Positions 8,771-56,300 of a stretch of DNA of 64,000 bases are shown here, piece by piece. Under the pieces are notes generated by a model. That model searched no databases and had not been told where the DNA came from. It saw nothing but the letters and a program-made list of their open reading frames with translations. Each line of letters opens with the position of its first letter. The stretch's first letter is position 1. The stretch spans positions 16,740,001 through 16,804,000 of the forward strand of contig NC_087262.1 of the NCBI RefSeq assembly GCF_037042905.1, in the 5' to 3' direction. Both the position numbers and the translations under genes were made by a program. The DNA is from Lytechinus pictus. Lineage: Eukaryota.

Positions 8771-9005
8771 TAAAGAGTATACATGAACTATTGACTTTTA
8801 TGAGATTATTTATAGTGTATCTGAAATGAGAATCCAATATGTTTGTAAACACCTTTCTGAATTTGTTTACATTTTGTGGTGTGTATATACACATAAATCT
8901 TAACACGAATCGAAGAACGTTCATACACATAAAATAATTTAATGAATGTAACTCGAGTATCAAAAGACCATTATTTTTAATTATTTCGTGAATCTGAATT
9001 AACCA

Positions 9006-32048: not shown

Positions 32049-33317
32049 GTGACAGAACTTGACCAGCAATGTGCAGCTAAGAAAGCAGAACTGGAGAAGA
32101 ACATTCAGAATATAGAAGAACAACGTCATGAGGTACACACTGCCATGCAGAAACTACTTGATGATGTCAAGCAGGCTTACAACATCAAGGTCACGGAGCT
32201 GGAAGGAAATCTTCAAGATCTCATCGAGCAAATAAATGAACTGAAGCGAAGATTCGAGGATGATCTCAACATCCTAAAATCCAAGGATCGACAGAGGATC
32301 AAGAGCATTTGTAGTTCGATTACATTGGTAGATAATGACAGACTGGGTCATCTTGAGACAGATAGTCTGTCTGCTCATAATTTGCTCTGTGGTGAGCTAG
32401 GTACCATGCTGAAAGAGGTTACCGATCGCACTACTGCGGAAGTTATTACAAAGAAAGCACAGGAGAAGAGTTTTAATCCTGGAGATAAATCTTGTCTTGA
32501 CCTCGGGAGCATCTCTGGATCAGATCCCAAGTTAAAAACCATGAAGTGTATAGATCTACGTGGGTGGATGGTTGGAATGACAGCTTACAGTCATACCAGT
32601 GTGGCCATCGTATATGGGAGTCATAATGCACGAGGTATTGATATCATTGATACAGCTGGTGGAACGGAGCGGTATACAAACATACCACATGACGTGGGTT
32701 ATGAAGATATTGGGATTCAACGAGACGGTGCATCATGTGTCTCAACTGTACGTGATACAGAAGCTCACGTGTATTCTCCCGATGGCTCCAGGAAAGCAAC
32801 AATCAACGTGAGTGGGACTGGTTATTATCTCACACTGAACAGAAGTCCATCAAATGAGATCCTCATTGCTAACGCTGCCAACAAAGTCTACATCTATGAC
32901 CCGACTGGATCTACTCTCAAACACACTGTTCCAACAAAGCACAGGACATGGCAGGTATCATCCACCAGGTTGGGTTTGATCGTCACCAGTTCATGTTATT
33001 TCACCAATCCAGGCGTGGTGACAGTCTATGACAGGGATGGGAATGCTGGTGAGTCTCTACAAGCTCCACAGGATGTCTACCTGTATGCTGCCGTGGATGA
33101 GCAGGACAGGGTGTATATAGCGAGTGTTGATAAGAAGAATAGGAAGGTGGTGATCAGGCTCTATGATCTTGATGGTCTGAACCTGAAGGAAAGGATTGAG
33201 TTTAATGCACTTGATATGACATTGGGCTGGGATTGGTGTTACTTGGTTTCCCTCTCTCCGGACCTACTCGCCTTTGCTTCTGGCAAGAAGTTATATTTCA
33301 TTAAGGTATTGCTGTAA
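32049..33317 (+). CDS. TRIM copy 2, coding exon 2 (coiled coil plus NHL-like propeller; product 632 aa)
   Basis: tttacAG|GTG acceptor; paralogue of 7505-8770; the ORF-track start at 31950 is intronic. Confidence 0.9.
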   Translation: MTELDQQCAAKKAELEKNIQNIEEQRHEVHTAMQKLLDDVKQAYNIKVTELEGNLQDLIEQINELKRRFEDDLNILKSKDRQRIKSICSSITLVDNDRLGHLETDSLSAHNLLCGELGTMLKEVTDRTTAEVITKKAQEKSFNPGDKSCLDLGSISGSDPKLKTMKCIDLRGWMVGMTAYSHTSVAIVYGSHNARGIDIIDTAGGTERYTNIPHDVGYEDIGIQRDGASCVSTVRDTEAHVYSPDGSRKATINVSGTGYYLTLNRSPSNEILIANAANKVYIYDPTGSTLKHTVPTKHRTWQVSSTRLGLIVTSSCYFTNPGVVTVYDRDGNAGESLQAPQDVYLYAAVDEQDRVYIASVDKKNRKVVIRLYDLDGLNLKERIEFNALDMTLGWDWCYLVSLSPDLLAFASGKKLYFIKVLL

Positions 33318-36300
33318 TAAAGAGTATCTCACTAGTGTGTATAACATGAACTATTGCTTTTCATGCAATTACTCATAGTGTATCTGAAATGAGAATCCAA
33401 AATGTTTGTAAACACCTTTATTAATTTGTTTACATATTGTGTATATATACACAGAGATTTTAACATGAATCGAAAAAACACGTTCATTACATAAAATAAT
33501 TTCATCATTGAAAATCAAGTATCAAAGACCATTATTTTTATTTATTTCGTGAATCTGAATTAACCACACAGTAGAAAAAAGATAATCACGTTGTTTAAGC
33601 CTGCCACTCTTATAATAAGTTGTTTCAACTTCTTTTTGTAACTGTTTAAACATTTTAAACATCTTGTTTAAAAAGCTGTAAGTTGTTTTAAAATAGACAG
33701 ATGCTTAAAAAGTTTAAACAGTAGTTGTTAGAGTGACGAGCTTAAACAACGTGCTTGACATTTTAGACAGCGTTTTTACAGTGTAATGCTTTTGTTGCCA
33801 TTCAACTGGTGTAATTAAGCTAGCGTTTAATATATATTTTGGGGTCTCTAGCTGTTATAGAGATTTCGATAAAAGACTATTATACTCATTCGAACTCTAT
33901 ATTTGTGAGTGTCAAGATTAGTCTTTATGAAATTGTGTACAATTGATATGCTGTTTTCTTGCAATTCAGCCTATTAGTTGTGGAGATACGTCAATGATCT
34001 CGAAATCTTAAAATTTTCTGCCCAGTGTTTATATGATGTGAAGGAAAAACCTAATAATCACGGATAATTATCAGCTCATTTCTTTCCTATTCGACCGTAA
34101 AATCTGAATCTGAATTAATCTGAATAAGGCTATATTTCTTTTTACGTGGAATGTATCCCCACAAACCGATTGATATATCAATATTTTCATATTATGAAAT
34201 GTGCATAATTACAGGAATTTTCATTTTGTATTAAAACACCTCGCTGAATGATTAATGTTTATAAACAGTCACTACAAATACAAACTACGATATTAACATA
34301 ATTTCAATTTCACTAGGGCATCCATAGAAATGTATTTATATCGAAGAACTTGTTATTGTTTTTTTTTTTATTGTTTTGCCTTTATTCAGAATACAATACA
34401 TCATAATATAACAAAGGTATAATAGTAATATTTTCTTGCATTGCACATTGCAATACGTTCTATTTTACAAAATTCAGGTTAGCTTAATAAATGATTAAAT
34501 TTCCATGAAATATAATAATAAAAACAACGAATCATATAAAGAAATAATACTTTGAACATTATTGAAATCAATATAAATCATGATAATTTGAATAAGGAAC
34601 TTCTTGTGAGAAAAGATGAATGGTGTACATTAAGCCAATGTAACACGGTGTATTTAATTAAATTTCTCAATATAAAAATGATTATGAATATCGGACTACG
34701 TGTTTATAAATTGCCGTTTGTTTATACCGCCCTCTTTCGAGAGAATCAGGACATGCTCTATCTTCGAACAACATGGAAAGGTATCTATTGGAGACTGAAT
34801 TATTTTCTGGAGAAAATCTTTTATCATATTCACCTTTTTAGAAAATGTTGATGGAAAGAAACAACACAAATGCACATACATACGGTTGTCCACCCCCCCC
34901 CCCAAAAAAAAAAGGATAATAAAAATCAATACAAATTTTAAAAAGGAAGTGATTGGACTCTTTGTTTTTTCTCAGATTTGACATTTATCGTGTAGAAGTG
35001 ACAGAATGACGAATGACGTACTGGAAAACATGATAATTAATTGTGACATCCTATAAAGTCTTCCTTTAAGTAAAAGAATAGCATTTACACTCTAATAATG
35101 AAACATTGAAAGGTTATTGAAAGATATTGATTCACTATCAATATATTCTATTTTCTAATTGAATTACTTGCTTGAAATTGCATATACATAATGTGTATAT
35201 AAATAATATTGAATTTATATTGTTATTACATTCTCTATAATATAGTGTGCATATGTATGTATGGAAACGTTTACCATAAAATATAAAATTAACACTTTTT
35301 TAAAGTTTTAATTTGACCCATATTTTGTTTCTAATACCTGTACATTCTCTTGATCTCATACATATCAAATCAATTTTAAAATGCGATTTCTATATGAATT
35401 ATTATTTTATGATATTAATTGTATGAATGTGTTTTTATTATTGATATTGATTGGTCAGTTCATTTAGCGATTAATCGCTAATCTTTGTGTTACGGAGCCC
35501 AGGTCTGGGTGGAAGGCCTTTGGGCGGTAGTAATTTATTTTAGGTTTTCCTTTCCCAGGCAACGCATGGGTCCCGTAACACAAAGATTAGTGATTAATTG
35601 CATATTTGATTTTGCGATTAATTATATATTGTAGTCAATGCAATCAATCGTAGAGAAATGATCTACAATAATTGCTAAGCTGTGTGTTACAGGCCCCTGG
35701 AGATTAATTAGTAAACATCCTCGTCTCTTTTGTTTTTGTATTTGTGTTCTCTTTGAAAATGTCATTTTGTTGATATACTGAATAAATGTATATACATGTA
35801 GAGGACTCCTCGCACGGAGTAAAAGATAAAATTGTACACATGGATTTTGAATTTCCACCTTGTAGGACTATTGATACTAAAAAAAGGATACTAAAAAGGG
35901 GGTACTTTAAATATTTCGTTGATAGAAAACAATAACTGTCCCCATACAAATATCATTGATATCTTTGGTTTGGTAAATAAAGTAATTTGTTCTTTTCGTG
36001 AATATTAATGTTTTTGTCGTTTGGAAATGTATACACATGGATTTCTGGCAAGATAGATTATAGTCTTACCACATAGTAAGGGGGATTTTAAGTGAATGAA
36101 TAAAAAAGATGTATAGTTTCATAATATGATTTCTGAATATGTTTGTTCAACTATTCGCTGCCTGCACTGGCATAATGTTTCTCTCCCGCGAATATCATAT
36201 TTTCATATTTTATTTTGTACTCCATTTTCAACTTTAGATATTTTTATTTTATAGTGTTATTCTTTTGGTAGGTGTCGTCTTTCGTCTCTATCCGTTATTG

Positions 36301-38261
36301 TAACCTGATTTTGTAAAATGCATATATCCAAACTAAGTCACAAGTTTTGTCTCTCATACAAGCATGAGATATTTCTTAACAAGCCCATCCGTTCCATTTC
36401 ATTTATTTTTTTTACCAAAAGTCACTTTTATTCACCTCAATATCCTTTCATCCGAGTTTTTTTTTCTATATTATGTACATTATAATTGGAATTGAACTCG
36501 TTGTGATATTTATGTACAATGTATTTTTGATATGAAAGTACTTTAATGCATTTTAAGAACGAAGAATTAATAAATCTTAAATATGATCAAATACCTTCTC
36601 ACAAACGAATTTCATTTCTAGTAAATCCGTCGATTTAAAGAAAGAGAGAACGGTGTATCAAACCAGGGTGCAATTTGTTTTACCCACTGTTCCCTCATGT
36701 TTGAATTATAATACCAATATTTTGCGCCAATTTATTGTTGTTTGTTATAATTTGGACTTAATGAATGTTAACAATTCAGTTTGACAAATGGAACGGAAAC
36801 TGTTTGCGTCATCAAAATTGCCTTCACTCTGAGAGTATAGATAATTTTGCACAAATATAATTATTTTATATGTTTCACATAACATATATAGTATATCATT
36901 TCATGTTTTTAACGACATATCTATCGAGTTTATGTCATCTCTTCATAATACGCTGACTGATTTCCATCTGTAAAATACGAAGAATTATTTCACCCACTAT
37001 TATATCCTATTATGGTGTAGCCAATAAAAACTAACGCTGTAAATATTCAAATCATAATAGAAGCGAATAATTTCATTATCATGTGAGTGAGGGTAGGAAT
37101 TGACAGACAAAGTGTTGGCCCTACTATAGAATGACATAATAAAATTCGACAATTAAGATTTCTAAACCAACTGATTATTTCCATTGATTATTAATGATAA
37201 TAATAATCAAGGGCGGCGCCATGATATTTTGATGGGGGGGGGGCACCGAAAGATAGAATTATAGGGATGTTTTATAGGTACATGGTCCAGACCTCTCCAT
37301 TTTAATTCTTTTTCCTCAATTCTTTCATTTCCTTCCATATTTTTCTCCTCCTTTGTCACTACGTACAAAATCGTATAGGGAGCGGTAGCCCCTACCATTT
37401 TCTCGATAGATAAATATAGGCAAAATGTTCATACCATTTGTTCCGGGAAGGGTAAGAAAAATGGAGATTGAAAGAAAGAAGGGAGGGGGCAGAAGGGGTA
37501 GAGGTTTGGAACTAAGGAGATGCGAAAGAGGGCAAGATGTAAAAGGGAATTATAATAATGAATAGTAAATTCAGAGAGGGGAAGAGGGAAATAGAAAAGA
37601 TGTGTGGGGAGATAAAAAGAGAGATAGGGGGAAAGGAAACTCATGCTGTTTGAAAGAATATCACATTACAAGACATCAGATAATTTTATTGTTATTCCGG
37701 ATAAAATCTATATAATATAAGGCCTAGTTAAGATCACGCAGCAGTATCAACGAAACCGACTCCAAACCGACCGACTGATACCCACCATTCGAAAAGAAAT
37801 GGTCAGACAGCCCTGGAGTCGGTTTTTTGTTACGTTGCAGTCTTTCGAACGAAACCGACTCCAAATAAACTATTATGCCATTTGAAATTAAAAAAAAATC
37901 CGTAATAGCCATGACCGAGTCCAAACCCACTGATACCATTTGAAAAAACAAATGGTAGACCTGACCGGTTTGATGTCTATTTCATTTGTGTGAAAGAATT
38001 AGCATAACACAGAAAAAAAAAATCAATGCTCCATGCAGTCATACCAACAAAACCGACTCCAAACCGATTGATTTCACATTTGAAAAACAAAAACAAACCG
38101 TTATAGCCCTGATCGGTTTTAAGTCGGTTTCATCAATGTGACTGTAGCGTGACAAAGAAATTACAAAATCAATGCACCAGTCACACTAACGAAACAAACC
38201 CCAAACCGACTGATGATAATATCATTGAAAATAACGTACAGATATATCTGGATTCGATGTT

Positions 38262-38520
38262 GACCCTTCTTACAAAGAATTGTGACTGATCCGATTAACA
38301 AAACTCTAGAAACCCAGCAAAATCAACAGATAAAATGCACGTTTGTTCACAATTTCTAAATATGATTCATATACATTCTTAGTTTTCTTGAAAATTCGGT
38401 GTGCTTCTCTTTCTTTACAAAGGGACATTGTGAAACTCAACTGTAGAAAATGACATAATATGGATTACAATACATTTAAGGTTGATCGGATCAGTCGTAA
38501 CTCTTTGTTAAGACGGGTCC
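38262..38520. mobile_element. ~260-bp MITE
   Basis: gacccttcttacaaagaattgtgactgatccgat ... atcggatcagtcgtaactctttgttaagacgggtc inverted ends. Confidence 0.65.
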
Positions 38521-40487
38521 CTGAAGTTTCTTATGAAATGAGGGGGTTAAGAATTTACTCTGCAAATGGGGGTGCTTGGGAAGTGGAATTCAACAAGAAA
38601 TTGGGGTCTTCAAGAACTGGCGGCTGAAATTAGGGGCTTAGGGACGGGAAGAACGAGTTGATCAATGAAAATGGATGAAGATTATTCTTTGTAACTGATG
38701 ACATGGCGTGAAAATGTAATAAACACTTATTGTTCAAATTTAGTAACCCTTTCAGCATTGTTCAGCCTTGTGCAAGGAATACTGAAATATCTTATTGCAT
38801 TCGAAGGCATATGACATATGAGAAATGTTACAATCATTTCGAGAAATAGAGATAAAGGAATGAAATACAAAGAAAGACATAGATAATGACTGAAAGGAAT
38901 GATACAAACGGGCGAAATGGAAGCAGGTCTTGATGGGGGGGTGTTATCATTTTTTAGGGGGGGCAACAAGTCACAAATTTTCAACGAGGATCTTAGTTCA
39001 TCCTACACAGTGTTGTTTTTTCAGGAGGGTACAGGTACTTTTTTGTTGAGAATCCTGAAAGTGATGGATTGAAGTAACTGAGTAATCACTAGTAGTATAT
39101 AGAGGAACGTTTTGAGTTTGAATGGTAAACAAAGGATTAAGTGGGTTATTATTTTGGTAAATTTTGATCAGTTTTCCAGGGAAGTGTAAGTTTTCAAAAT
39201 TTTCCCATCTAAAGGGGACGGGCAATTGCCCATTTCTCATATAAAACTGAATTGCAGCCACTGAGGTGGCCCATGTTTGAAAAAATAAGGTCTAATACCT
39301 ATTTTTGATACAAAATTTTAAAAATGGCCCTGCTTCCCTAACAATGTAATCCGTATTAAGGTTTTTTTTTATTAGTTTCTTCTTCATGTTCACCTAGCTC
39401 TTTCCTATTTTTCCTTCCCTTTTTTAAGGAATGATCATCATCGAAAAATAACGGAGAAGGAATTCAAAATTCCTCATACTTCCAATAAAGTAAATCAACA
39501 GCTACAGATATCATTTTGTATACAGGCATGTTTATTATGAGCCTTTTAAATAAGTTGTTTCGCGAATTATTTTCAAACCGTTTTAATAAGATATTTGAAG
39601 TATACATTAAAGAACGCATCTTAAGTAAAAACAAATTGTCTGATATTATAGGGAGTTACATCATGACCCGGACTGGGATCGATAATCAGTATGGATCATG
39701 GAAATTATGTTTAAAAAAACTTTTATAATACGCTGTTTACTATATGAACTTCACAGAATTAAGTTGTTTAAAACAGCTTAAACATATTAAACAAGTTAGT
39801 GTTTGAAATCTTGAACAAGAGGGGAGAAATCAGAGATATGAGAAATTAAAGGAAAAGGTATGGTACTTTGTGTACAAACAAATAGAGAGTTAATCAGCAA
39901 CTTTGAAGCAAGTATGCCAATTTGAGGATCCCCTGACAGTAAAACTGCTGCTTTAATTTTTACACAATGATGTTGACTGTATACACTAGTTGTTTAACAT
40001 TTTAAACAATCATGCTAAATTTATTGATAAATCAATATAGAAAAAATAAACGCTTATGTTGATTAAGATTTTACACACTTGTTTGAACAATAAGATTCAT
40101 GGTGTAAACAGCGTTGTACAGTGTTTTTACTGTGTAGAGATAATACAGTACGTGTATCTCTCAACATTGCTCAATGATCCAAAAATGGATTAGAATTGAA
40201 CACCCTCTATCGATAAGGTGACAAATGCTTCCATCAAGTTCAAAGGTAGCTGGGAAAAACCAGTTCTATTTATCATTATACTATTATGCTATTGTAATAT
40301 ATCGCAGCTTCCTCATTCCACAAAGTCATATTGTAATAGAAGTTTCGCGCACACAATCATTTCACGACCGTGACGTGCACAATAATTATTATGTACATAT
40401 TTACAGCAGTGTTACTCGTAGCTATCTCTCACAACTAAGTAGTACTCAGTTTCGTTGAAATAGTTTGACTGTAGAGTTTATGTAGCT

Positions 40488-41117
40488 ATGGCTGAAAAGA
40501 TTGAAATAGAGAAAGCCTCCAGTTCTTCACAGAACCTGGTATGTCCGCTGTGTCTTGATATTTTTGATGAACCAACGATCCTGACGTGCGGACACACTTT
40601 CTGTCGAAAGTGTCTCAAGAAATATGATCTGACCCACCAGGACATTGACCACATGGTCTGTCCTCTCTGTAGGGAGATCACCAAGTTGTCTTCCAACCGA
40701 GTCGACGATCTCCAACTCAATGTCTCCATTAACGGATTCGTAGACGATTACCACGCCAAGTGTGGAGGGATGAATTCTGTTCTTGAAATGAACCATAAAT
40801 GCACAGCTTGCAAGTTTCAGCAAGACGCTGTCTCCTTCTGCAGAACATGTAATAACTACATATGTGATAAATGTTTACAATCTCACCAGTGTATGACAAT
40901 GTTTGAAGATCACGAGATTGTCTCCATGGAGGATGTCATCGAAGGGAAGGTCAGCATTGGTCATCAATTTGAGAAATGCTCCATCCACAAACAAGAGAAC
41001 AAAGATATGTTTTGTGATGATTGTAAGGTCAGTGTCTGTCTCAGGTGCCTGGTCGTTGGTCACAAGGTCCATAACATCAAGAACCAGTCGGACTTCGAGC
41101 AGGAGTTGAGGCGAAAG
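40488..41117 (+). CDS. TRIM copy 3, coding exon 1
   Basis: Paralogue with intact RING and B-boxes; donor AAG|GTAATG. Confidence 0.93.
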
Positions 41118-42444
41118 GTAATGGTCATTTGAGATTTAGGGGTATCAAGTAGAAAACAATATCTTAAAGAAGATGCTGATGAAGATTGTGCCGCTGAAGG
41201 AGAAGAAGATGATGATACTAGCTATTCTTTTATTAATACCCCTGACTTCCTCGTCCTCCCCCTCAGTATAGGGACGCAGAACCAGTTGGGGTATACTTTT
41301 AAGCCTCCGATCTTTTTTTTTCAGTAAATGTGTACAAAAAATAAATGACAATATTATTGTGAAATGTTACATGCCCCCCCCCCCTTCTTGGATCAGCCCC
41401 CGCTCTCAAAACAATGCCACGACCCCAGTACCGTGTGAGTAAAAAAAAATGACACCTCATATTTTAACGAAAATATTATGCCATTTGCATAATCATATAT
41501 GGCCTGAAAGAATATTTTCTCCCAAATAACTTAATACGTTATTTATGTGGACTGTGTTCACGCTTGAATGATCAAGATATATTATTTTATTCTTATTTGT
41601 ATTGATGTAAATTTTGATTTGCGCTAAAGCAAGACATGGCTGCAATAAATTACTCCATATGTCAGTGATGTCATAATATATACAAGAGTTCCATCAAAAT
41701 CCATTTCAGAATACGTTATCGATAATTTGCATTTATTGTTTAATAACGACTTTTAAGTATTAATTCTCAAGTTGATTTCATTGAAGGGATTTGCAAATTA
41801 ATATGTTTACTAATTCATGATCTGATGATGGATTATGAATGACATCATTGGCATACGGATTCGTTCATTGCAGTAATGCCAAACTTTCGCGCAAATCAAG
41901 ATTTGCATCACTGCAAAGAATACCAACTGTATCTAAGCGTGAAGACATACCACATAAATATGGAATTAAATTAAATCAAGATTTCCCTTAAAATGGGGAC
42001 TTATGAGGTGTCAAGTTTTTATTCACACGGTATATGGCTAATTGTGATATCAATGTTAATAATAACAATGAAAAATTGATGATGATAATTATAAATAATA
42101 ATGATATTGATAACAATAGTAATACTGATACTATTGTTAATTTTGACAAAATCTAAATTAATTCTAATAATAATAATAAAAAACTATCATTAATACATAT
42201 AATATAGCAGTAATAATACGACTACTCATATAATGGTAATAACTGTCACTCATATCATTCGTTGCCTCCCCTACCCCCCCCCCCTCCTCATCCAGAATAG
42301 AGATTAAAAAATATTGATGTGACAACTTCCCGGGTGTATTATGTTAAACTTTATAATGGTTACATTCATTCAAAATTCTTCTAAACATTGTTTACGTGAA
42401 TGATTATTTTACAGCAAACGGTTACTATTTTTTTTCTCTCTTAG

Positions 42445-43710
42445 GTGACAGACCTTGCCCAGCAATGTGCAGCTAAGAAAGCAGAACTGGAGAAGAACAT
42501 TCAGAATATAGAATTACAACGTCATGAGGTACACACTGCCATGCAGAAACTACTAGATGATGTCAGCCAGGCTTACAGCATCAAGGTCAAAGAGCTGGAA
42601 GGAAATCTTCAAGATCTCATCGAGCAAATAAATGAACTAAAGCGAAGTTTCGAGGATGATCTCAACATCCTAAAGTCCAAGGAACGACAGAGGATCAAAA
42701 GCATTTGTAGTTCGGTTACATTGGTAGATAATGACAGACTGGGTCATCTTGAGACAGATAGTCTGTCCGCTCATAATTTGCTTTGTAAGGAGCTAGAAGC
42801 TATGCTGAAAGAGGTTACCGATCGCACTACTGCGGAAGTTATTACAAAGAAAGCACAGGAGAAGAGTTTTAATCCTGGAGATAAATCTTGTCTTGACCTC
42901 GGGCGCATTTCAGGATCAGATCCCAAGTTAGAAACCATGAAGTGTATAGATCTACGAGAGCGGATGGTTGGAATGACAGCTTACACTCGTACCAGTGTGG
43001 CCATCGTATATGGGAATAATACACGAGGTATTGATATCATTGATACAGCTGGTGGAACGGAGCAGTATACAAACATACCACATAACGTGCATGGTTATGT
43101 CGGTATTGTGATTCAGCGAGACGGTGTATTATGTGTCTCAACTGGTTCTACAGAAGCACACGTGTATTCTACCAATGGCTCCAGGAAAGCAACAATCAAC
43201 GTGAGTCGGACTCGTTATTATCTCACACTGAACAGAAGTCCTTCAAATGAGATCCTCATTGCTAATAGTGCCAACAAAGTCTACATCTATGACCCGACTG
43301 GATCCACTCTCAAACACACTGTTCCAACAAAGCACGTGACGAGGCAGGCATCATCCACCAGGTCGGGTTTGATCGTCACGAGTTCATGTTTTCTCACCAA
43401 TCCAAGCGTGGTGACGGTCTATGACAGGGATGGGAATGCTGGTGAGTCTCTGCAAGCTCCGGAGGGTGTCTACCTGTATGCTACCGTGGATGAGCGAGAC
43501 AGGGTGTATGTAGCGAGTGTTGATTGGAAGAATAAGAAGGTGGTGATCAGACTATATGATCTTGATGGTCTGAACCTGAGGGAAAGAGTTGAGTTTAATG
43601 CACTTGATATGACATCGGGTTGGTGTTGGTGTTACTTGGTTTCCCTCTCACCGGACCTACTCGCCTTTGCTTGTTACATGACGTTATATTTCATCAAGGT
43701 ATCGCTGTAA
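42445..43710 (+). CDS. TRIM copy 3, coding exon 2 (product 631 aa)
   Basis: ctcttAG|GTG acceptor; 1327-bp intron lacking the large insertions of copies 1 and 2. Confidence 0.9.
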   Translation: MTDLAQQCAAKKAELEKNIQNIELQRHEVHTAMQKLLDDVSQAYSIKVKELEGNLQDLIEQINELKRSFEDDLNILKSKERQRIKSICSSVTLVDNDRLGHLETDSLSAHNLLCKELEAMLKEVTDRTTAEVITKKAQEKSFNPGDKSCLDLGRISGSDPKLETMKCIDLRERMVGMTAYTRTSVAIVYGNNTRGIDIIDTAGGTEQYTNIPHNVHGYVGIVIQRDGVLCVSTGSTEAHVYSTNGSRKATINVSRTRYYLTLNRSPSNEILIANSANKVYIYDPTGSTLKHTVPTKHVTRQASSTRSGLIVTSSCFLTNPSVVTVYDRDGNAGESLQAPEGVYLYATVDERDRVYVASVDWKNKKVVIRLYDLDGLNLRERVEFNALDMTSGWCWCYLVSLSPDLLAFACYMTLYFIKVSL

Positions 43711-46700
43711 TGAAGAGTATCTCACTAGTGTGTATAACATGAACTATTGCTTTTCATGCAATTACTCATAGTGTATCTGAAATGAGAATCCAAAATGTTT
43801 GTAAACACCTTTATTAATTTGTTTACATATTGTGTGTATATACACAGAGATTTTAACATGAATCGAAAAAACACGTTCATTACATAAAATAATTTCATCA
43901 TTGAAAATCAAGTATCAAAGACCATTATTTTTATTTATTTCGTGAATCTGAATTAACCACACAGTAGAAAAAAGATAATCACGTTGTTTAAGCCTGCCAC
44001 TCTTATAATAAGTTGTTTCAACTTCTTTTTGTTATTGTTTAAACATTTTAAACATCTTGTTTAAAAAGCTGTAAGTTGTTTTAAAATAGACAGATGCTTA
44101 AAAAGTTTAAACAGTAGTTGTTAGAGTGACGAGCTTAAACAACGTGCTTGACATTTTAAACAGCGTTTTTACAGTGTAATGCTTTTGTTGCCATTCAACT
44201 GGTGTAATTAAGCTAGCGTTTAATATATATTTTGGGGTCTCTAGCTGTTATAGAGATTTCGATAAAAGACTATTATACTCATTCGAACTCTATATTTGTG
44301 AGTGTCAAGATTAGTCTTTATGAAATTGTGTACAATTGATATGCTGTTTTCTTGCAAGTCAGCCTATTAGTTGTGGAGATACGTCAATGATCTCGAAATC
44401 TTAAAATTTTCTGCCCAGTGTTTATATGATGTGAAGGAAAAACCTAATAATCACGGATAATTATCAGCTCATTTCTTTCCTATTCGACCGTAAAATCTGA
44501 ATCTGAATTAATCTGAATAAGGCTATATTTCTTTTTACGTGGAATGTATCCCCACAAACCGATTGATATATCAATATTTTCATTTTATGAAATGTGCATA
44601 ATTGCAGGAATTTTCATTTTGTATTAAAACACCTCGCTGAATGATTAATGTTTATAAACAGTCACTACAAATACAAACTACGATATTAACATAATTTCAA
44701 TTTCACTAGGGCATCCATAGAAATGTATTTATATCGAAGAACTTGTTATTGTTTTTTTTTTTATTGTTTTGCCTTTATTCAGAATACAATACATCATAAT
44801 ATAACAAAGGTATAATAGTAATATTTTCTTGCATTGCACATTGCAATACGTTCTATTTTACAAAATTCAGGTTAGCTTAATAAATGATTAAATTTCCATG
44901 AAATATAATAATAAAAACAACGAATCATATAAAGAAATAATACTTTGAACATTATTGAAATCAATATAAATCATGATAATTTGAATAAGGAACTTCTTCT
45001 GAGAAAAGATGAATGGTGTACATTAAGCCAATGTAACACGGTGTATTTAATTAAATTTCTCAATATAAAAATGATTATGAATATCGGACTACGTGTTTAT
45101 AAATTGCCGTTTGTTTATACCGCCCTCTTTCGAGAGAATCAGGACATGCTCTATCTTCGAACAACATGGAAAGGTATCTATTGGAGACTGAATTATTTTC
45201 TGGAGAAAATCTTTTATCATATTCACCTTTTTAGAAAATGTTGATGGAAAGAAACAACACAAATGCACATACATACGGTTGTCCACCCCCCCCCCCCAAA
45301 AAAAAAAAGGATAATAAAAATCAATACAAATTTTAAAAAGGAAGTGATTGGACTCTTTGTTTTTTCTCAGATTTGACATTTATCGTGTAGAAGTGACAGA
45401 ATGACGAATGACGTACTGGAAAACATGATAATTAATTGTGACATCCTATAAAGTCTTCCTTTAAGTAAAATAATAGCATTTACACTCTAATAATGAAACA
45501 TTGAAAGGTTATTGAAAGATATTGATTCACTATCTATATATTCTATTTTCTAATTGAATTACTTGCTTGAAATTGCATATACATAATGTGTATATAAATA
45601 ATATTGAATTTATATTGTTATTACATTCTCTATAATATAGTGTGCATATGTATGTATGGAAACGTTTACCATAAAATATAAAATTAACACTTTTTTTAAG
45701 TTTTAATTTGACCCATATTTTGTTTCTAATACCTGTACATTCTCTTGATCTCATACATATCAAATCAATTTTAAAATGCGATTTCTATATGAATTATTAT
45801 TTTATGATATTAATTGTATGAATGTGTTTTTATTATTGATATTGATTGGTCAGTTCATTTAGCGATTAATCGCTAATCTTTGTGTTACGGAGCCCAGGTC
45901 TGGGTGGAAGGCCTTTGGGCGGTAGTAATTTATTTTAGGTTTTCCTTTCCCAGGCAACGCATGGGTCCCGTAACACAAAGATTAGTGATTAATTGCATAT
46001 TTGATTTTGCGATTAATTATATATTGTAGTCAATGCAATCAATCGTAGAGAAATGATCTACAATAATTGCTAAGCTGTGTGTTACAGGCCCCTGGAGATT
46101 AATTAGTAAACATCCTCGTCTCTTTTGTTTTTGTATTTGTGTTCTCTTTGAAAATGTCATTTTGTTGATATACTGAATACATGTATATACATGTAGATGA
46201 CTCCTCGCACGGAGTAAAAGATAAAATTGTACACATGGATTTTGAAGTTCCACCTTGTAGGACTATTGATACTAAAAAAAGGATACTAAAAAGGGGGTAC
46301 TTTAAATATTTCGTTGATAGAAAACAATAACTGTCCCCATACAAATATCATTGATATCTTTGGTTTGGTAAATAAAGTAATTTGTTCTTTTCGTGAATAT
46401 TAATGTTTTTGTCGTTTGGAAATGTATACACATGGATTTCTGGCAAGATAGATTATAGTCTTACCACATAGTAAGGGGGATTTTAAGTGAATGAATAAAA
46501 AAGATGTATAGTTTCATAATATGATTTCTGAATATGTTTGTTCAGCTATTCGCTGCCTGCACTGGCATAATGTTTCTCTCCCGCGAATATCATATTTTCA
46601 TATTTTATTTTGTACTCCATTTTCAACTTTAGATATTTTTATTTTATAGTGTTATTCTTTTGGTAGGTGTCGTCTTTCGTCTCTATCCGTTATTGTAACC

Positions 46701-49700
46701 TGATTTTGTAAAATGCATATATCCAAACTAAGTCACAAGTTTTGTCTCTCATACAAGCATGAGATATTTCTTAACAAGCCCATCCGTTCCATTTCATTTA
46801 TTTTTTTACCAAAAGTCACTTTTATTCACCTCAATATCCTTTCATCCGAGTTTTTTTTTCTATATTATGTACATTATAATTGGAATTGAACTCGTTGTGA
46901 TATTTATGTACAATGTATTTTTGATATGAAAGTACTTTAATGCATTTTAAGAACGAAGAATTAATAAATCTTAAATATGATCAAATACCTTCTCACAAAC
47001 GAATTTCATTTCTAGTAAATCCGTCGATTTAAAGAAAGAGAGAACGGTGTATCAAACCAGGGTGCAATTCGTTTTACCCACTGTTCCCTCATGTTTGAAT
47101 TATAATACCAATATTTTGCGCCAATTTATTGTTGTTTGTTATAATTTGGACTTAATGAATGTTAACAATTCAGTTTGACAAATGGAACGGAAACTGTTTG
47201 CGTCATCAATATTGCCTTCACTCTGAGAGTATAGATAATTTTGCACAAATATAATTATTTTATATGTTTCACATAACATATATAGTATATCATTTCATGT
47301 TTTTAACGACATATCTATCGAGTTTATGTCATCTCTTCATAATACGCTGACTGATTTCCATCTATGAAATACACAGAATTATTTCAACCATTATTATAGC
47401 CTATTATGGTGTAGCCAATAAAAACTAACGCTGTAAATATTCAAATCATAATAGAAGCGAATAATTTCATTATCATGTGAGTGAGGGTAGGAATTGACAG
47501 ACAAAGTGTTGGCCCTACTATAGAATGACATAATAAAATTTGACAATTAAGATTTCTAAACCAACCGATTATTTCCATTGATTATTAATGATAATAATAA
47601 TCAAGGGCGGCGCCATGATATTTTGATGGGGGGGGGGCACCGAAAGATAGAATTTGAGGGATGTTTTATAGGTACATGGTCCAGACCTCTCCATTTTAAT
47701 TCTTTTTCCTCAATTCTTTCCTTTCCTTCCATATTTTTCTCCTCCTTTGTCACTACGTACAAAATCGTATAGGGAGCGGTAGCCCCTACCATTTTCTCGA
47801 TAGATAAATATAGGCAAAATGTTCATACCATTTGTTCCGGGAAGGGTAAGAAAAATGGAGATTGAAAGAAAGAAGGGAGGGGGCAAAAGGGGTAGAGGTT
47901 TGGAACTAAAGGAGGTGCGAAAGAGGGCAATATTTAAAAGGGAATTATAATAATGAATAGAGTAAAGTCAGAGATGGGAAGAGGGAGGTAGAAAAGATGT
48001 GAGGTGGGGATAAAAAGAGAGATAGGGGAAAGGAAACTCATGCCGTTTGAAAGTATATCACATTACAAGACATCAGATAATTTTATTGTTATTCCGGATA
48101 AAATCTATATAATATAAGGCCTAGTTAAGATCACGCAGCAGTATCAACGAAACCGACTCCAAACCGACCGACTGATACAATGTACACCATTCGAAAAAGA
48201 AATGGTCAGACAGCCCTGGGGTCTGATTTTTGTTATGTTGCAGTCTTACGAACAAAACCGACTCCAAATAAACTATTATGCCATTTGAAATTTTAAAAAA
48301 AATCCGTAATAGCCCTGACCGAGTCCAAACCCACTGATACCATTTGAGAAAAAAAAATGGTAGACCTGACCGGTTTGATGTCTATTTCATTTGTGTGAAA
48401 GAATTAGCATAACACAGAAAAAAAAATCAATGCTCCAGTTATACCAACAAAACCGACTCCAAACCGATTGATTTGACATTTGAAAAACAAAAACAAACCG
48501 TTATAGCCCTGATCGGTTTTAGGTCGGTTTCATCGATGTGACTGTAGCGTGACAAAGAAATTACAAAATCAATGTAATGGAAACAGGTCTTGATGGGAGG
48601 TGTTATTATTTTTTTAGGGGGGGGGGGCAAGTCACAAATTTTCAACGAGGGTCTTAGTTCATCCTACAGTGTTGTTTTTTCTTCAGGAGGGAACAGGTGA
48701 TTTTTTGTTGAGAATCCTGAAAGTGATGGATTAAAGTAACTGAGTAATCACTAGTAGTATATAGAGGAACGTTTTGAGTTTGAATGGTAAAAAAAGGATT
48801 AAGTGGATTATTATTTTGGTAAATTTGGATCAGTTTTCCAGGGAAGTGTAAGTTTTCAAAATTTTCCCATCTAAAGGGGACGGGCAATTGCCCATTTCTC
48901 ATATAAAACTGAATTGCAGCCACTGAGGTGGCCCATGTTTGAAAAAATAAGGTCTAATACCTATTTTTGATACAAAATTTTAAAAATGGCCCTGCTTCCC
49001 TAACAATGTAATCCGTATTAAGGTTTTTTTTTATTAGTTTCTTCTTCATGTTCACCTAGCTCTTTCCTATTTTTCCTTCCCTTTTTTAAGGAATGATCAT
49101 CATCGAAAAATAACGGAGAAGGAATTCAAAATTCCTCATACTTCCAATAAAGTAAATCAACAGCTACAGATATCATTTTGTATACAGGCATGTTTATTAT
49201 GAGCCTTTTAAATAAGTTGTTTCGCGAATTATTTTCAAACCGTTTTAATAAGATATTTGAAGTATACATTAAAGAACGCATCTTAAGTAAAAACAAATTG
49301 TCTGATATTATAGGGAGTTACATCATGACCCGGACTGGGATCGATTATCAGTATGGATCATGGAAATTATGTTTAAAAAAACTTTTATAATACGCTGTTT
49401 ACTATATGAACTTCACAGAATTAAGTTGTTTAAAACAGCTTAAACATATTAAACAAGTTAGTGTTTGAAATCTTGAACAAGAGGGGAGAAATCAGAGATA
49501 TGAGAAATTAAAGGAAAAGGTATGGTACTTTGTGTACAAACAAATAGAGAGTTAATCAGCAACTTTGAAGCAAGTATGCCAATTTGAGGATCCCCTGACA
49601 GTAAAACTGCTGCTTTAATTTTTACACAATGATGTTGACTGTATACACTAGTTGTTTAACATTTTAAACAATCATTCTAAATTTATTGATAAATCAATAT

Positions 49701-50161
49701 AGAAAAAATAAACGCTTATGTTGATTAAGATTTTACAAACTTGTTTGAACAATAAGATTCATGGTGTAAACAGCGTTGTACAGTGTTTTTACTGTGTAGA
49801 GATAATACAGTACGTGTATCTCTCAACATTGCTCAATGATCCAAAAATGGATTAGAATTGAACGCCCTCTATCGATAAGGTGACAAATGCTTCCATCAAG
49901 TTCAAAGGTAGCTGGGAAAAACCAGTTCTATTTATCATTATACTATTATGCTATTGTAATATATCGCAGCTTCCTCATTCTTTATTAATGTGCACAAAGT
50001 CATATTGTAATAGAAGTTTCGCGCACACAATCATTTCACGACCGTGACGTGCACAATAATTATTATGTACATATTTACAGCAGTGTTACTCGTAGCTATC
50101 TCTCACAACTAAGTAGTACTCAGTTTCGTTGAAATAGTTTGACTGTAGAGTTTATGTAGCT

Positions 50162-50791
50162 ATGGCTGAAAAGATTGAAATAGAGAAAGCCTCCAGTTCT
50201 TCACAGAACCTGGTATGTCCGCTATGTCTTGATATTTTTTATGAACCAACGATCCTGACGTGCGGACACACTTTCTGTCGAAAGTGTCTCAAGAAATATG
50301 ATCTGACCCACCAGGACATTGACCACATGGTCTGTCCTCTCTGTAGGGAGATCACCAAGTTGTCTTCCAACCGAGTCGACGATCTCCAACTCAATGTCTC
50401 CATTAACGGATTCGTAGACGATTACCACGCCAAGTGTGGAGGGATGAATTCTGTTCTTGAAATGAACCATAAATGCACAGCTTGCAAGTTTCAGCAAGAC
50501 GCTGTCTCCTTCTGCAGAACATGTAATAACTACATATGTGATAAATGTTTACAATCTCACCAGTGTATGACAATGTTTGAAGATCACGAGATTGTCTCCA
50601 TGGAGGATGTCATCGAAGGGAAGGTCAGCATTGGTCATCAATTTGAGAAATGCTCCATCCACAAACAAGAGAACAAAGATATGTTTTGTGATGATTGTAA
50701 GGTCAGTGTCTGTCTCAGGTGCGTGGTCGTTGGTCACAAGGTCCATAACATCAAGAACCAGTCGGACTTCGAGCAGGAGTTGAGGCGAAAG
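50162..50791 (+). CDS. TRIM copy 4, coding exon 1
   Basis: Two amino-acid differences from copy 3 exon 1; donor AAG|GTAATG. Confidence 0.93.
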
Positions 50792-52123
50792 GTAATGGTC
50801 ATTTGAGATTTAGGGGTATCAAGTAGAAAACAATATCTTAAAGAAGATGCTGATGAAGATTGTGCCGCTGAAGGAGAAGAAGATGATGATACTAGCTATT
50901 CTTTTATTAATACCCCTGACTTCCTCGTCCTCCCCCTCAGTATAGAGACGCAGAACCAGTTGGGGTATACTTTTAAGCCTCCGATCTTTTTTTTTCAGTA
51001 AATGTGTACAAAAAATAAATGACAATATTATTGTGAAATGTTACATGCCCCCCCTTCTTGGATCAGCCCCCGCTCTCAAAACAATGCCACGACCCCAGTA
51101 CCGTGTGAGTAAAAAAAAATGACACCTCATATTTTAACGAAAATATTATGCCATTTGCATAATCATATATGGCCTGAAAGAATATTTTCTCCCAAATAAC
51201 TTAATACGTTATTTATGTGGACTGTGTTCACGCTTGAATGATCAAGATATATTATTTTATTCTTATTTGTATTGATGTAAATTTTGATTTGCGCTAAAGC
51301 AAGACATGGCTGCAATAAATTACTCCATATGTCAGTGATGTCATAATATATACAAGAGTTCCATCAAAATCCATTTCAGAATACGTTATCGATAATTTGC
51401 ATTTATTGTTTAATAACGACTTTTAAGTATTAATTCTCAAGTTGATTTCATTGAAGGGATTTGCAAATTAATATGTTTACTAATTCATGATCTGATGATG
51501 GATTATGAATGACATCATTGGCATACGGATTCGTTCATTGCAGTAATGCCAAACTTTCGCGCAAATCAAGATTTGCATCACTGCAAAGAATACCAACTGT
51601 ATCTAAGCGTGAAGACATACCACATAAATATGGAATTAAATTAAATCAAGATTTCCCTTAAAATGGGGACTTATGAGGTGTCAAGTTTTTATTCACACGG
51701 TATATGGCTAATTGTGATATCAATGTTAATAATAACAATGAAAAATTGATGATGATAATTATAAATAATAATGATATTGATAACAATAGTAATACTGATA
51801 CTATTGTTAATTTTGACAAAATCTAAATTAATTCTAATAATAATAATAAAAAACTATCATTAATACATATAATATAGCAGTAATAATACGACTACTCATA
51901 TAATGGTAATAACTGTCACTCATATCATTCGTTGCCTCCCCTACCCCCCCCCCCCCCCCCCCTCCTCATCCAGAATAGAGATTAAAAAATATTGATGTGA
52001 CAACTTCCCGGGTGTATTATGTTAAACTTTATAATGGTTACATTCATTCAAAATTCTTCTAAACATTGTTTACGTGAATGATTATTTTACAGCAAACGGT
52101 TACTATTTTTTTTTCTCTCTTAG

Positions 52124-53389
52124 GTGACAGACCTTGCCCAGCAATGTGCAGCTAAGAAAGCAGAACTGGAGAAGAACATTCAGAATATAGAATTACAACG
52201 TCATGAGGTACACACTGCCATGCAGAAACTACTAGATGATGTCAGCCAGGCTTACAGCATCAAGGTCAAAGAGCTGGAAGGAAATCTTCAAGATCTCATC
52301 GAGCAAATAAATGAACTAAAGCGAAGTTTCGAGGATGATCTCAACATCCTAAAGTCCAAGGAACGACAGAGGATCAAAAGCATTTGTAGTTCGGTTACAT
52401 TGGTAGATAATGACAGACTGGGTCATCTTGAGACAGATAGTCTGTCCGCTCATAATTTGCTTTGTAATGAGCTAGAAGCTATGCTGAAAGAGGTTACCGA
52501 TCGCACTACTGCGGAAGTTATTACAAAGAAAGCACAGGAGAAGAGTTTTAATCCTGGAGATAAATCTTGTCTTGACCTCGGGCGCATTTCAGGATCAGAT
52601 CCCAAGTTAGAAACCATGAAGTGTATAGATCTACGAGAGCGGATGGTTGGAATGACAGCTTACACTCGTACCAGTGTGGCCATCGTATATGGGAATAATG
52701 CACGAGGTATTGATATCATTGATACTGCTGGTGGAACGGAGCAGTATACAAACATACCACATAACGTGCATGGTTATGTCGGTATTGTGATTCAGCGAGA
52801 CGGTGTATTATGTGTCTCAACTGGTTGTACAGAAGCACACATGTATTCTACCAATGGCTCCAGGAAAGCAACAATCGAAGTGAATGTGGCTTGTTTTTAT
52901 ATCACACTGAACAGAAGTCCATCAAATGAGATCATCATTGCTAACGGTGCCAACAAAGTCTACATCTATGACCCGACTGGATCCACTCTCAAACACACTG
53001 TTCCAACAAAGCACAAGACATGGCAGGTATCATCCACCAGGTCTGGTTTGATCATCACCAGTTCTTGTCATCTCACCAATCCAAGCGTGGTGACGGTCTA
53101 TGACAGGGATGGGAATGCTGGTGAGTCTCTGCAAGCTCCAAAGGATGTCAACCTGTATGCTACCGTGGATGAGCAGGACAGGGTGTATGTAGCGAGTGTT
53201 GATTATAAGAATAAGAAGGTGGTGATCAGGCTCTATGATCTTGATGGTCTGAACCTGAAGGAAAGAGTTGAGTTTAATGCACTTGACATGACATTGGGTG
53301 ATAATTGGTGTTACTTGGTGTCCCTCTCTCCGGACCTACTCGCCTTTGCTTGTATGAAGAAGTTATATTTCATCAAGGTATCGCTGTAA
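52124..53389 (+). CDS. TRIM copy 4, coding exon 2 (product 631 aa; chimeric)
   Basis: ctcttAG|GTG acceptor; 5' part like copy 3, 3' part like copy 1. Confidence 0.9.
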   Translation: MTDLAQQCAAKKAELEKNIQNIELQRHEVHTAMQKLLDDVSQAYSIKVKELEGNLQDLIEQINELKRSFEDDLNILKSKERQRIKSICSSVTLVDNDRLGHLETDSLSAHNLLCNELEAMLKEVTDRTTAEVITKKAQEKSFNPGDKSCLDLGRISGSDPKLETMKCIDLRERMVGMTAYTRTSVAIVYGNNARGIDIIDTAGGTEQYTNIPHNVHGYVGIVIQRDGVLCVSTGCTEAHMYSTNGSRKATIEVNVACFYITLNRSPSNEIIIANGANKVYIYDPTGSTLKHTVPTKHKTWQVSSTRSGLIITSSCHLTNPSVVTVYDRDGNAGESLQAPKDVNLYATVDEQDRVYVASVDYKNKKVVIRLYDLDGLNLKERVEFNALDMTLGDNWCYLVSLSPDLLAFACMKKLYFIKVSL

Positions 53390-56300
53390 TAAAGAGTATA
53401 CATGAACTATTGACTTTTATGAGATTATTTATAGTGTATCTGAAATGAGAATCCAATATGTTTGTAAACACCTTTCTGAATTTGTTTACATTTTGTGGTG
53501 TGTATATACACATAAATCTTAACACGAATCGAAGAACGTTCATACACATAAAATAATTTAATGAATGTAACTCGAGTATCAAAAGACCATTATTTTTAAT
53601 TATTTCGTGAATCTGAATTAACCACACAGTAAAAAAAAAACACGTTGTTTAAGCCTGTCACTCTAATAACAAGTTGTTTCACTTTCTTTGTAATTGTTTA
53701 AACATTTAAAAAAACTAGTTTTTAAGTTGTTTTTAAAATAAACAGATGTTTAAAGGGTTTAACAGTAGTCGTTAGAGTGTCGGGCTTAAACAACGTGCTT
53801 GAAATCGTAAATAGCGTTTTTACAGTGTATTGCTGGTGTTGTCATTCAACTCGTGTAATTAACATGATTAAGCCAGCGTTTAATATTTTGGGGTCTCTGT
53901 TATAGAGAATTCGATGAAAGGCTAATGTATTAAACGAACTTTATATTTTGTGAGTTATAAGATTTGCTTTTGGAAATTGTGTACAATCGATTTGCTGTTT
54001 TGTTGCAAGCCAGTCTATATTATTTGTGGATATACGTAAATATGATCTCGAAATTTTAGATTTTTTCTGTCCAGTGTTATGATGTGAAAATTAAAGGCCT
54101 AATAATTACGGATATCAGCTGAATTCTTTCCTATTCGACGATAAACCCATTAATCTGAATAGGCCTTAAGTTCTTCTTGTGTGGAATGTATAGTCCCCAC
54201 AAACCACTTGATTTATTAATATTTTCATTTTATGAAATGTCCATAATTACAGGAATATTAATTTTGTATCAAAACACCTCGCTGAATGATTAATGTTTAT
54301 AATCAGTCACTACAAATACAAACTACGATATTAAAATATTTCAATTTCACGAGGGCATCCATAGACATGTTTTTATATCAAAGAACTTGTTATTCTTTTT
54401 TTTTACTAGAAATTTTTTGCCTTTATTCAGAATACAACACATCATAGTATAAGTAGATAAGAACTTATATTTTCTTGCATTGCACATTGGCATACGTTCT
54501 TTTTCACAAAATTTAGGTTAGCTTAATAAATGACTATATTTCCATGAAATATAATAATCAAAACAATGAATCATAATAAAGAAATGATACTTTGAACATT
54601 ATAGAAATCAATATAAATCATGATAATTTGAATAAGGAACTTCTTATGAGAAAAGATGAATGGTTTACATTAAGCCAATATGACACCGGTGTATTTTATT
54701 ACAATTTATCAATATAAGAATGATTATACAACATGAATATCGGACTATGTGTTTATAAATTGCCGTTTGTTTTATAATGCCCTCTTTCGAGAGGATAATG
54801 ACATGCTCTTCAAACAACATGGAAAGGTATCTATTGGAAACTGATTCTATCCAAAGATTATACAATGAATAATTTTCTGGAAAAAAATCTATTATCATAT
54901 TCACCGCTTTAGAAAATGTTGGACAGAAACAACACAAATACACATAGATACGCTTGTCCACCCCCCCCCCAAAAAAAAAGGAAGTGATTGGTCTCTTTAT
55001 TGTTTTTGTTTCTTAGATTTGACATTAATCTCTTAAAAGTGACAGAATGACGATTAGTACTGTAAATTATTTAATATAAGATAATACTGATAATTGTGAC
55101 ATCCTATAAGGTCTTACACTCTAATAATGAAACATTGAAAGGTTATTGAAATATGTTGATTCAGTATCTATATATTCTATTTTCTAATTGAATTACTTGC
55201 GTGAAATTGCATAGATATAATGTGTATATGAATAATATTGAAATTTATATTGTTATTACATTCTCTATATCATAGTGTGCATAATGTATGTAAGGAAATG
55301 TTTACCATAGAATATAAATTTTACACTTTTTAAAGTTTTGATTTGACCCATATTTGTTTCTAATACCTCTATATTATCTGGATCTCATACATATCAAATT
55401 AAGTTTAAAATGCTATTTCTATATGAATTATTATTGTATAATATTAAATGTATGAATGTGTTTTTATTATTGATATTGATTGGTCAGTTCATTTAGCGAT
55501 TGATCGCTAATCTTTGTGTTACGGAGCCCTGGTCTGGGAGGAAGGCCTTTGGGTGGTAGTAATTTATTTTAGGTTTTCCTTTCCTAGGCAACCCATGGGT
55601 CCCGTAACACAAAGATAAGTGATTAATTGCATATTTGATTTTTACGATTAATTGTATATTGTAGTCAATGCAATCAATCGTAGAATAATGTTCTACAATA
55701 ATTGCTAAGCTCTGTCTTACGGGCCCATGGAGATGAATTGGTAAACATCCTCGTCTCTTTTGTTTTTGTATTTGTGTTCTCTTTGAAAATTTCATTTTGT
55801 TGATATACTGAACAAAAATAATAATAACAATGTATATACATGTAGAGGACTCCTCGCACGGATTAAAAAAAGTTGTACATGCATGGATTTTGAAGTTCAA
55901 ACTTGTATGACTATTGACACTAAAAAAAGGGGATACCAAAAAAAAGGGGGTACTTTAAATGTTTCGTTGATAGAAAAACAATAACCGTCCCCATACAAAT
56001 ATCATTGATGTCTTCGGTTCGGTAAATAAATTAATTTGTTCTCTTCGTGAATATTTAGGTTTTTGTCGTTTGGAAATTTATACACATGGATTTCTGGCAA
56101 GATAGACTATGGTCTTACCACATAGGAAGGGGGATTTTAAGTGAATGAATAAAAAAGATGTATAGTTTCATAATATGATTTCTAAATATGTTTGTTCAGC
56201 TATTCGCTGCCTGCACTGGCATAATGTTTCTCTTCCGCGAATATCATATTTTCATATTTTATTTTGTACTCCATTTTCAACTTTAGATATTTTCATTTTA

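Follow-up and report, generated by a model that had tools for sequence, protein, structure and literature searches.

Why should the end of one gene in a tandem array differ sharply from that of its neighbour when the DNA on either side of it is nearly identical to other copies? This question is raised by a stretch of 64,000 nucleotides from the sea urchin Lytechinus pictus (NCBI RefSeq assembly GCF_037042905.1, contig NC_087262.1, positions 16,740,001 to 16,804,000 of the forward strand), hereafter the window, in which positions are counted from its first letter. The window contains four two-exon genes, all on the plus strand (copies 1 to 4), and the divergent segment, referred to here as the island, is the last 571 bp of exon 2 of copy 3. 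Our analysis indicates that copy 3 is probably a three-part mosaic, generated by ordinary homologous recombination within a large tandem array together with diversifying selection, with no dedicated cassette system. The features on which the argument first depends are the following.

40488-41117, plus strand: copy 3 exon 1, 210 codons encoding a RING and two B-boxes, with a GT donor at its end
42445-43710, plus strand: copy 3 exon 2, with an AG acceptor, 421 codons and a stop, encoding a predicted coiled coil, linker and six-bladed propeller
43140-43710, plus strand: the island, which in copy 3 exon 2 covers codons 232-421 and the stop, or roughly the final four propeller blades
33318-43139, plus strand: repeat block U3, comprising the copy 2 3' spacer and then copy 3 exon 1, intron and exon-2 front
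43711-52819, plus strand: repeat block U4, comprising the copy 3 3' spacer and then copy 4 exon 1, intron and exon-2 front
38176-38915, plus strand: a 740-bp indel, present in U3 and missing from U4 at 48575

Alignment of the copy 3 unit (33318-43710) with the copy 4 unit (43711-53389) using MAFFT gave 88 substitutions in 9070 aligned bases (0.97%) before position 43140, and 51 in the 571 bases of the island (8.9%; Fisher p = 8e-28 against the preceding block). At the protein level the two copies differ at two residues in exon 1 and two in the exon-2 front (4 of 441 residues), and at 28 of the last 190. An earlier sequence-only reading of this DNA had counted about 4 and about 28 residue differences, and had described ~33318-43140 as near-identical to ~43711-52820 apart from a ~750-bp deletion near 48575; both observations were borne out by our recount. 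The indel is probably a deletion in U4, because part of the segment recurs in other units: in a self-BLAST, 38557-39264 matches 22017-22747 and 38559-39719 matches 62860-63994. Divergence between the two blocks is uneven, at 0.49% over 33318-36815, 2.95% over 36816-38175, 11.9% over 38916-39050 and 0.37% over 39051-43139. Judged by this pattern, the young repeat block is a mosaic in its own right, with 3-12% divergence at 36816-39050 around the indel and 0.4-0.5% in the rest.

The comparator chosen determines what the island looks like. Between copies 3 and 4 the divergence is 0.0% at the end of the intron, 0.4% over the exon front, 8.9% over the island and 12.3% over the first kilobase past the stop codon (114 substitutions in 927 bases, with a further 87 gap columns). 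For copies 3 and 2 the corresponding values are 13%, 6.4%, 8.9% and 0.7% (7 of 988), and for copies 4 and 1 they are 4.2%, 7.9%, 3.7% and 0.9%; the copy 3 island differs from copy 1 by 8.1%. The first kilobase of U4 is thus close to the copy 2 3' flank. The segment looks like an island because its left flank is compared with copy 4 and its right flank with copy 2; when one comparator is kept throughout, there is a step and not an island. The proposal that the flanks are near-identical on both sides therefore holds for each flank taken singly, but needs two different partners. Similarly, the suggestion that coding sequence here is more divergent than the adjacent non-coding DNA is true when the island is set against the preceding block, but fails against the downstream flank of copy 4, where the coding end is less divergent than the truly homologous non-coding sequence. 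Each border is abrupt: copies 3 and 4 first part at the codon at 43147, and the switch of copy 3 to equality with copy 2 falls within 43703-43721, where the stop codon (43708-43710) lies.

Counted per site, synonymous changes are as frequent in the island as those that alter the protein. Between copies 3 and 4 the method of Nei and Gojobori (NG86) gave a synonymous divergence (dS) of 0.107 and a non-synonymous divergence (dN) of 0.092 in the island, compared with 0.007 and 0.004 in the exon front; there are 13 synonymous differences in the island and one in the front. The sequence-only reading had itself proposed that a dS as elevated as dN would point to an old recombined tract rather than to selection, and the island is such a tract by this measure. 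At the breakpoints, synonymous and flanking non-coding divergence shift together with dN, as expected of a mosaic. The copy 3 island also carries many synonymous variants that are absent from the other copies, and no recent donor for it was found in the 812-Mb assembly, in which the best non-self match is 93%.

The ancestry of the neighbouring segments was examined across the array on the chromosome of the window (C18; the window is C18:16740001-16804000), which was read outside the window in alternate 10-kb pieces. Copy 4 has a twin 74 kb downstream (locus L041, C18:16864001-16874000) with an identical exon 2; the twin duplication corresponds to window positions 49975-60700 and extends for at least 10 kb at 99.3-99.4% identity. 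This one protein has two RefSeq accessions. The features of the partner copies are as follows.

50162-50791, plus strand: copy 4 exon 1, equal to the N-terminal part of XP_054773803.2
52124-53389, plus strand: copy 4 exon 2, a chimera that is copy-3-like to ~52820 and mostly copy-1-like from ~52896
52896-54336, plus strand: the copy-1-like tract in copy 4, made up of the final ~490 bp of coding sequence and the next ~950 bp of 3' flank; the corresponding stretch of copy 1 is 8277-9720
52877-52903, plus strand: a patch private to copy 4, 27 bp in hypervariable loop 9
3430-4059 and 7505-8770, plus strand: copy 1 exons 1 and 2, whose translations equal XP_063969373.1; the partner of the end of copy 4
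26377-27006, plus strand: copy 2 exon 1, from local alignment to XP_063969461.1
32049-33317, plus strand: copy 2 exon 2, 422 codons and a stop, its start derived from the length of XP_063969461.1 (632 aa)
32766-33355, plus strand: a tract shared by copy 2 and locus L014, 590 bp with 1 mismatch, almost exactly the segment equivalent to the island

The maximum-likelihood tree of the exon front places copy 3 beside copy 4 and its twin (100/100). In the maximum-likelihood tree of the island, copy 4 and its twin group with copy 1 (100/98), copy 2 groups with L014 (100/99), and copy 3 stands alone on a branch of 0.047. Approximately unbiased (AU) tests on the island data reject a grouping of copy 3 with copy 4 (p 0.012) and of copy 3 with copy 2 (p 0.0004), and on the front data reject a grouping of copy 1 with copy 4 (p 5e-5). 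Neighbouring segments thus have significantly different nearest relatives, and the genes are a mosaic of the kind left by gene conversion and unequal crossover.

Within its copy-1-like tract, copy 4 differs from copy 1 at 0-3 positions per 100 bp, compared with 5-14 elsewhere; the strict copy-1/copy-4 tract in a pairwise scan is L009 1897-2824. A few copy-3-like residues lie between the copy-3-like front and the copy-1-like end. The private patch has 9 base changes in 7 of its 9 codons, every one non-synonymous; its exact matches are copy 4 and the twin only, with related loop variants in locus L008 and in RefSeq models of version 1. Over the whole island, copies 1 and 4 are separated by 21 non-synonymous and 0 synonymous changes. 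We considered this 21:0 contrast as proof of a burst of selection and dropped it, as 9 of the changes fall in one patch, several others are copy-3-like residues and the tract is patchy.

An adaptive burst of point substitutions after duplication would explain the island without recombination, if copies 3 and 4 had once been identical throughout and the island had diverged in place by positive selection alone. The diversifying selection on the propeller loops described below is compatible with this, as are the 21:0 contrast and the wholly non-synonymous patch of copy 4. The burst is already contradicted by the 13 synonymous differences between copies 3 and 4 in the island and by a divergence that persists, and rises, in the non-coding DNA past the stop codon; in addition, the end of copy 4 groups with copy 1, its 950 bp of flank included, and the island data reject a clade of copies 3 and 4. 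We consider this explanation highly improbable.

Ends have moved elsewhere in the array. L014 lies ~98 kb upstream of copy 2, and the tract they share is bounded by divergent flanks on both sides. Further combinations are found among RefSeq proteins with version-1 accessions, which occur only in the NCBI non-redundant (nr) protein collection, with no listed genome record, and which we take to come from an earlier annotation. In one of these the end is that of copy 3, with identity over exon-2 residues 271-421, and the front is another; two carry a front of the copy 3/4 type with other ends. These combinations are either haplotype variation, and thus real shuffling, or a disagreement between assemblies. 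No genome record encoding the copy 3 protein or XP_054773627.1 was found.

The history of copy 3 that we favor as probable would combine these events. Left of ~43140 copy 3 would be a very recent duplicate of the unit carrying copy 4, and right of its stop codon a very recent duplicate of the copy 2 3' spacer; these two recent stretches would be the two ends of one repeated block of ~9.8 kb, and the intervening 571 bp a paralogous tract of greater age, as far from every other copy as is usual in the array. The extra ~9.8-kb unit would have arisen by one unequal crossover between neighbouring paralogues, with at least two later gene conversions, in which copy 4 gained a copy-1-like end with ~950 bp of flank and a single end became common to copy 2 and L014. 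These changes can be ordered in two ways that fit equally well, each with three events and similar coincidences of borders. In the first, the crossover would have fallen at the stop codon, copies 3 and 4 would at first have shared the present end of copy 3, and that of copy 4 would then have been overwritten by a copy-1-like end. In the second, copy 2 and the ancestor of copy 4 would have crossed over near 43140, leaving copy 3 with the original end of copy 2, and L014 would have overwritten that of copy 2 itself. Across the family, each copy would keep a private propeller face and its introns, coiled coil and spacers would be repeatedly homogenised; coding DNA would come to be more divergent than neighbouring non-coding DNA because the end of the exon encodes a hypervariable, diversifying propeller.

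The arrangement could also be an artefact, if the assembly had wrongly placed two haplotypes of a single locus in tandem as the copy 3 and copy 4 units, and perhaps also as copy 4 and its twin; the island would then be allelic variation and its junction false. The repeat blocks differ by ~0.4-3% with indels, which is within the allelic range of highly heterozygous sea urchins; the twin of copy 4 extends for at least 10 kb at 99.4% identity, and the version-1 RefSeq proteins differ in the array. False tandem duplications usually abut gaps, however, and for 26 kb around the junctions the assembly is free of gaps, with zero runs of N between 17188 and 64000. The junction at the stop codon ties the private end of copy 3 to a spacer of the copy 2 type, a combination that a chimeric join would have to invent. 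Similar mosaics recur in many other copies on two chromosomes, and the RefSeq models are intact genes for all four copies. On balance an artefact seems unlikely, and the mosaic history remains our preferred explanation.

The gene models on which these comparisons depend were compared exon by exon, never as a spliced product, and the junction was checked through the match of each exon to RefSeq proteins. For copies 1, 3 and 4 every exon translation matches its part of an L. pictus RefSeq protein, that of copy 3 exon 1 being equal to the first 210 residues of XP_054773260.2; local alignment matched copy 2 in full to XP_063969461.1, across exon 1 and the two parts of exon 2. The first exon encodes a RING at residues 19-61 (Pfam zf-RING_UBOX, expect value (E) 5.9e-11; zf-C3HC4, E 8.8e-9) and two B-boxes, one matching Pfam zf-B_box (E 1e-8; residues 163-198) and one ANCHR-like (residues 105-144). 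For exon 2, AlphaFold2 predicts a long coiled coil, with helices at residues 2-91, 96-127 and 130-139, followed by a linker that is short and disordered and, starting near residue 160, by a beta-propeller. The mean predicted local distance difference test score (pLDDT) of the model is 79.7, with the propeller mostly >90, and its 24 beta strands at residues 161-420 would form a six-bladed propeller.

A fold search was needed for the C-terminal domain because the sequence searches came back empty: a Pfam scan of exon 2 with a cutoff of E <= 0.01 found neither an NHL repeat nor a filamin domain, and a search of the PDB by sequence with the C-terminal 261 aa returned only matches at E > 0.2. The best compact matches in Foldseek are the NHL domains of TRIM2, TRIM3, Brat, Thin and Lin41 (E 7e-10 to 1e-8), with target-normalised template modelling (TM) scores of 0.66-0.72 and a sequence identity of 11-16% to these structures. 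By these models the genes encode RING/B-box/coiled-coil (TRIM/RBCC) proteins with an NHL-like six-bladed propeller, and the term propeller used in the sequence-only reading proves apt as a description of the fold. RefSeq names for these proteins are TRIM71-like, TRIM45-like and similar. A duplication of ~33 residues is present in the linker (exon-2 residues ~145-178) of about half of the C18 copies, for example L002, L004, L006, L007, L010, L011 and L015, and of some copies on a second chromosome, giving proteins of ~663-667 aa.

The island used as a query detected 20 copies on C18 (16.62-16.96 Mb) and at least 20 on this second chromosome (C14), where the array lies at 20.70-21.13 Mb on the plus strand and 26.94-27.11 Mb on the minus strand; the C14 loci L021-L030 share their hypervariable sites with C18. 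An open exon-2 frame is present in 28 of the 30 loci read. The frame is interrupted in L008 (C18:16831298) and L012 (C18:16958994), which are probably pseudogenes. When the loops between propeller strands are numbered in order, the 12 with odd numbers are all hypervariable, with 5-10 residue types among 28 copies, and the 11 with even numbers are all conserved (Mann-Whitney p 7e-5). Successive loops of a beta-meander point to opposite faces, and because of this alternation the variation would be confined to one face of the propeller. The island holds 9 of the 12 hypervariable loops, and the other three lie in the shared front; the island is therefore not a domain-level module.

Counts of the proportions of non-synonymous and synonymous sites that differ (pN/pS) show where in the gene this variation is concentrated. 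Among the C18 copies the ratio rises from 0.28 for the coiled coil to 1.04 for the first blades and 1.16 for the island, and the propeller end thus differs mainly at sites that change amino acids. Circularity was avoided by defining the hypervariable sites in one array and scoring them in the other: sites defined as variable on C14 have a pN/pS of 4.1 on C18, and in the reverse direction the value is 4.4, compared with 0.87 and 0.69 for the remaining propeller sites under the same cross-validation. The propeller loops are under diversifying selection. Synonymous divergence between the C18 and C14 copies is 0.40 in the coiled coil and only 0.20 in the propeller end.

The distribution of recombination tracts was surveyed in a scan of all pairs of loci for near-identity tracts of at least 300 bp, in locus positions in which the island occupies 1501-2071. 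About 25 tracts cover the intron and exon front, all ending at positions 900-1534, and about 12 run downstream, most starting at 1986-2074. Apart from the whole-unit twins, the island itself is covered only by the tract between copy 2 and L014, and in part by that between copies 1 and 4. Per 95-nt bin, the distance to the nearest neighbour is 0-1 over the intron and front, mostly 2-6 over the propeller and 1-3 beyond it, and several other pairs resemble copies 3 and 4 in having identical fronts and ends that differ mostly by non-synonymous changes. A tract of identity necessarily appears to stop where it first runs into a variable codon; this pattern would follow from selection for private faces or from heteroduplex extension limited by mismatches, and either may set the tract ends. 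The idea in the sequence-only reading that the propeller end resists homogenisation accordingly survives in a softened form, in that tracts usually stop at the variable propeller and the loops have a pN/pS of about 4; as an account of the island it has to yield to the dS, which marks an old tract.

The same survey bears on its other idea, an exchangeable cassette. Ends do move, by ordinary recombination, as in copy 2 and L014, in copy 4 with its copy-1-like end and in the version-1 protein that joins the end of copy 3 to another front. In its stronger form, a cassette would be a mobile propeller end with defined borders, swapped among fixed fronts by a specialised or programmed process like the donor-cassette variation of antigens and receptors. 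Several borders do nearly coincide: identity between copies 3 and 4 ends at 43147, the tract of copy 2 and L014 starts at the equivalent of ~43159 and stops ~38 bp past the stop codon, and copy 4 turns copy-1-like no more than ~100 bp from this left border. One end is found on two fronts and one front with three ends when current and version-1 RefSeq models are taken together. The left border is not a domain edge, however, since the propeller starts at about residue 160 of exon 2 and the island at residue 232, inside blade 2, and three variable loops are left outside. The tract ends of other pairs are scattered over 900-1534, and the shared borders coincide with the first hypervariable codons, where any tract of identity must seem to stop. 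No border motif was found. No silent or stand-alone cassettes were found in the 30 loci read, in which the island lies 3' of exon-2 sequence, the fronts of the two loci without an open frame being unexamined. The claim of a cassette as a unit thus falls, and a dedicated mechanism of this kind is very doubtful; ordinary recombination in the array is again the explanation we prefer.

Several points weigh against this account. Mean pS among the C18 copies is 0.066 in the island but 0.114 in the coiled coil, which means that greater age, or protection from every exchange, does not by itself account for the propeller end. The pN/pS ratios are pairwise counts and not estimates from a recombination-aware codon model, and the pairs counted in the tract scan are not independent events. 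The common face of the variable loops follows from the order of the predicted strands, not from model coordinates, and should be read as provisional. The assembly is the sole source for the tandem arrangement of near-identical blocks, and the front and end combinations of the version-1 RefSeq proteins mean either haplotype variation or that one of the assemblies is wrong here.

Other elements of the window lie outside the propeller ends. Reverse-transcriptase open reading frames of the long interspersed nuclear element (LINE) type are present on the minus strand at 4811-7181, in the intron of copy 1, and at 10768-13900, in the spacer after copy 1; within the former, 4811-5698 is repeated at 6231-7118 with 99.8% identity. 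A 145-bp satellite occupies 57427-59460, 4 kb 3' of copy 4, with 14 copies and 98% matches, and has a different copy number at the twin locus. Relatives of these genes occur in L. variegatus and Strongylocentrotus purpuratus, so that the family is present in at least three sea-urchin species; literature searches found no published description of it in echinoderms.

The island is best regarded as an ordinary product of unequal crossover and gene conversion, for which a new mechanism is unnecessary. The signal at the level of the family is the evolutionary signature of a recognition repertoire, and is worth following up. It is possible, though we would stop short of calling it probable, that the at least 40 genes of the two arrays form a diversified repertoire of cytosolic E3 ligases. 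In such a repertoire the 12-loop propeller face would bind ligands as a recognition surface kept private by selection, and recombination at the conserved framework between loops would shuffle groups of these loops among copies and haplotypes to give new binding faces in the germ line. If so, the family would be to echinoderms what the B30.2 TRIM restriction-factor families are to vertebrates, with an NHL-like propeller as its basis. Echinoids are already known for huge families of innate receptors, and the NHL domain is otherwise known from conserved, single-copy RNA-binding regulators. The family is also a tractable case for asking what these ligases recognise and how a gene is divided between selection for diversity and homogenisation by recombination.

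Clusters of MHC, KIR and plant NLR genes are mosaics of gene conversion and unequal crossover, with sharp switches of nearest relative and diversity kept in the part that serves recognition. Copy 3 resembles them in having recent tracts beside old ones, and we see no difference in principle. The finTRIM, btr and hltr genes of fish and the TRIM5-type genes of primates (PMC3137616) are likewise clustered RING-B-box-coiled-coil E3 genes with hypervariable C-terminal loops under positive selection, whose copies recombine; their variable domain is B30.2 (PRY/SPRY), whereas here it would be an NHL-like propeller with 12 variable loops on one face, in an echinoderm host. The canonical TRIM-NHL proteins (TRIM2, TRIM3, TRIM32/Thin, TRIM71/Lin41 and Brat; PMC9634614) include the best compact structural matches to the propeller, but are single-copy, conserved developmental regulators, in contrast to a family of at least 40 copies with a hypervariable face and no Pfam NHL match. 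Among sea-urchin genes, the Sp185/333 and TLR expansions (PMC5103432, PMC3367398) share the tandem clusters, segmental duplication, recombination and diversifying selection seen here; they are unrelated secreted effectors and membrane receptors, whereas the present genes presumably encode a cytosolic E3 ligase with a propeller.

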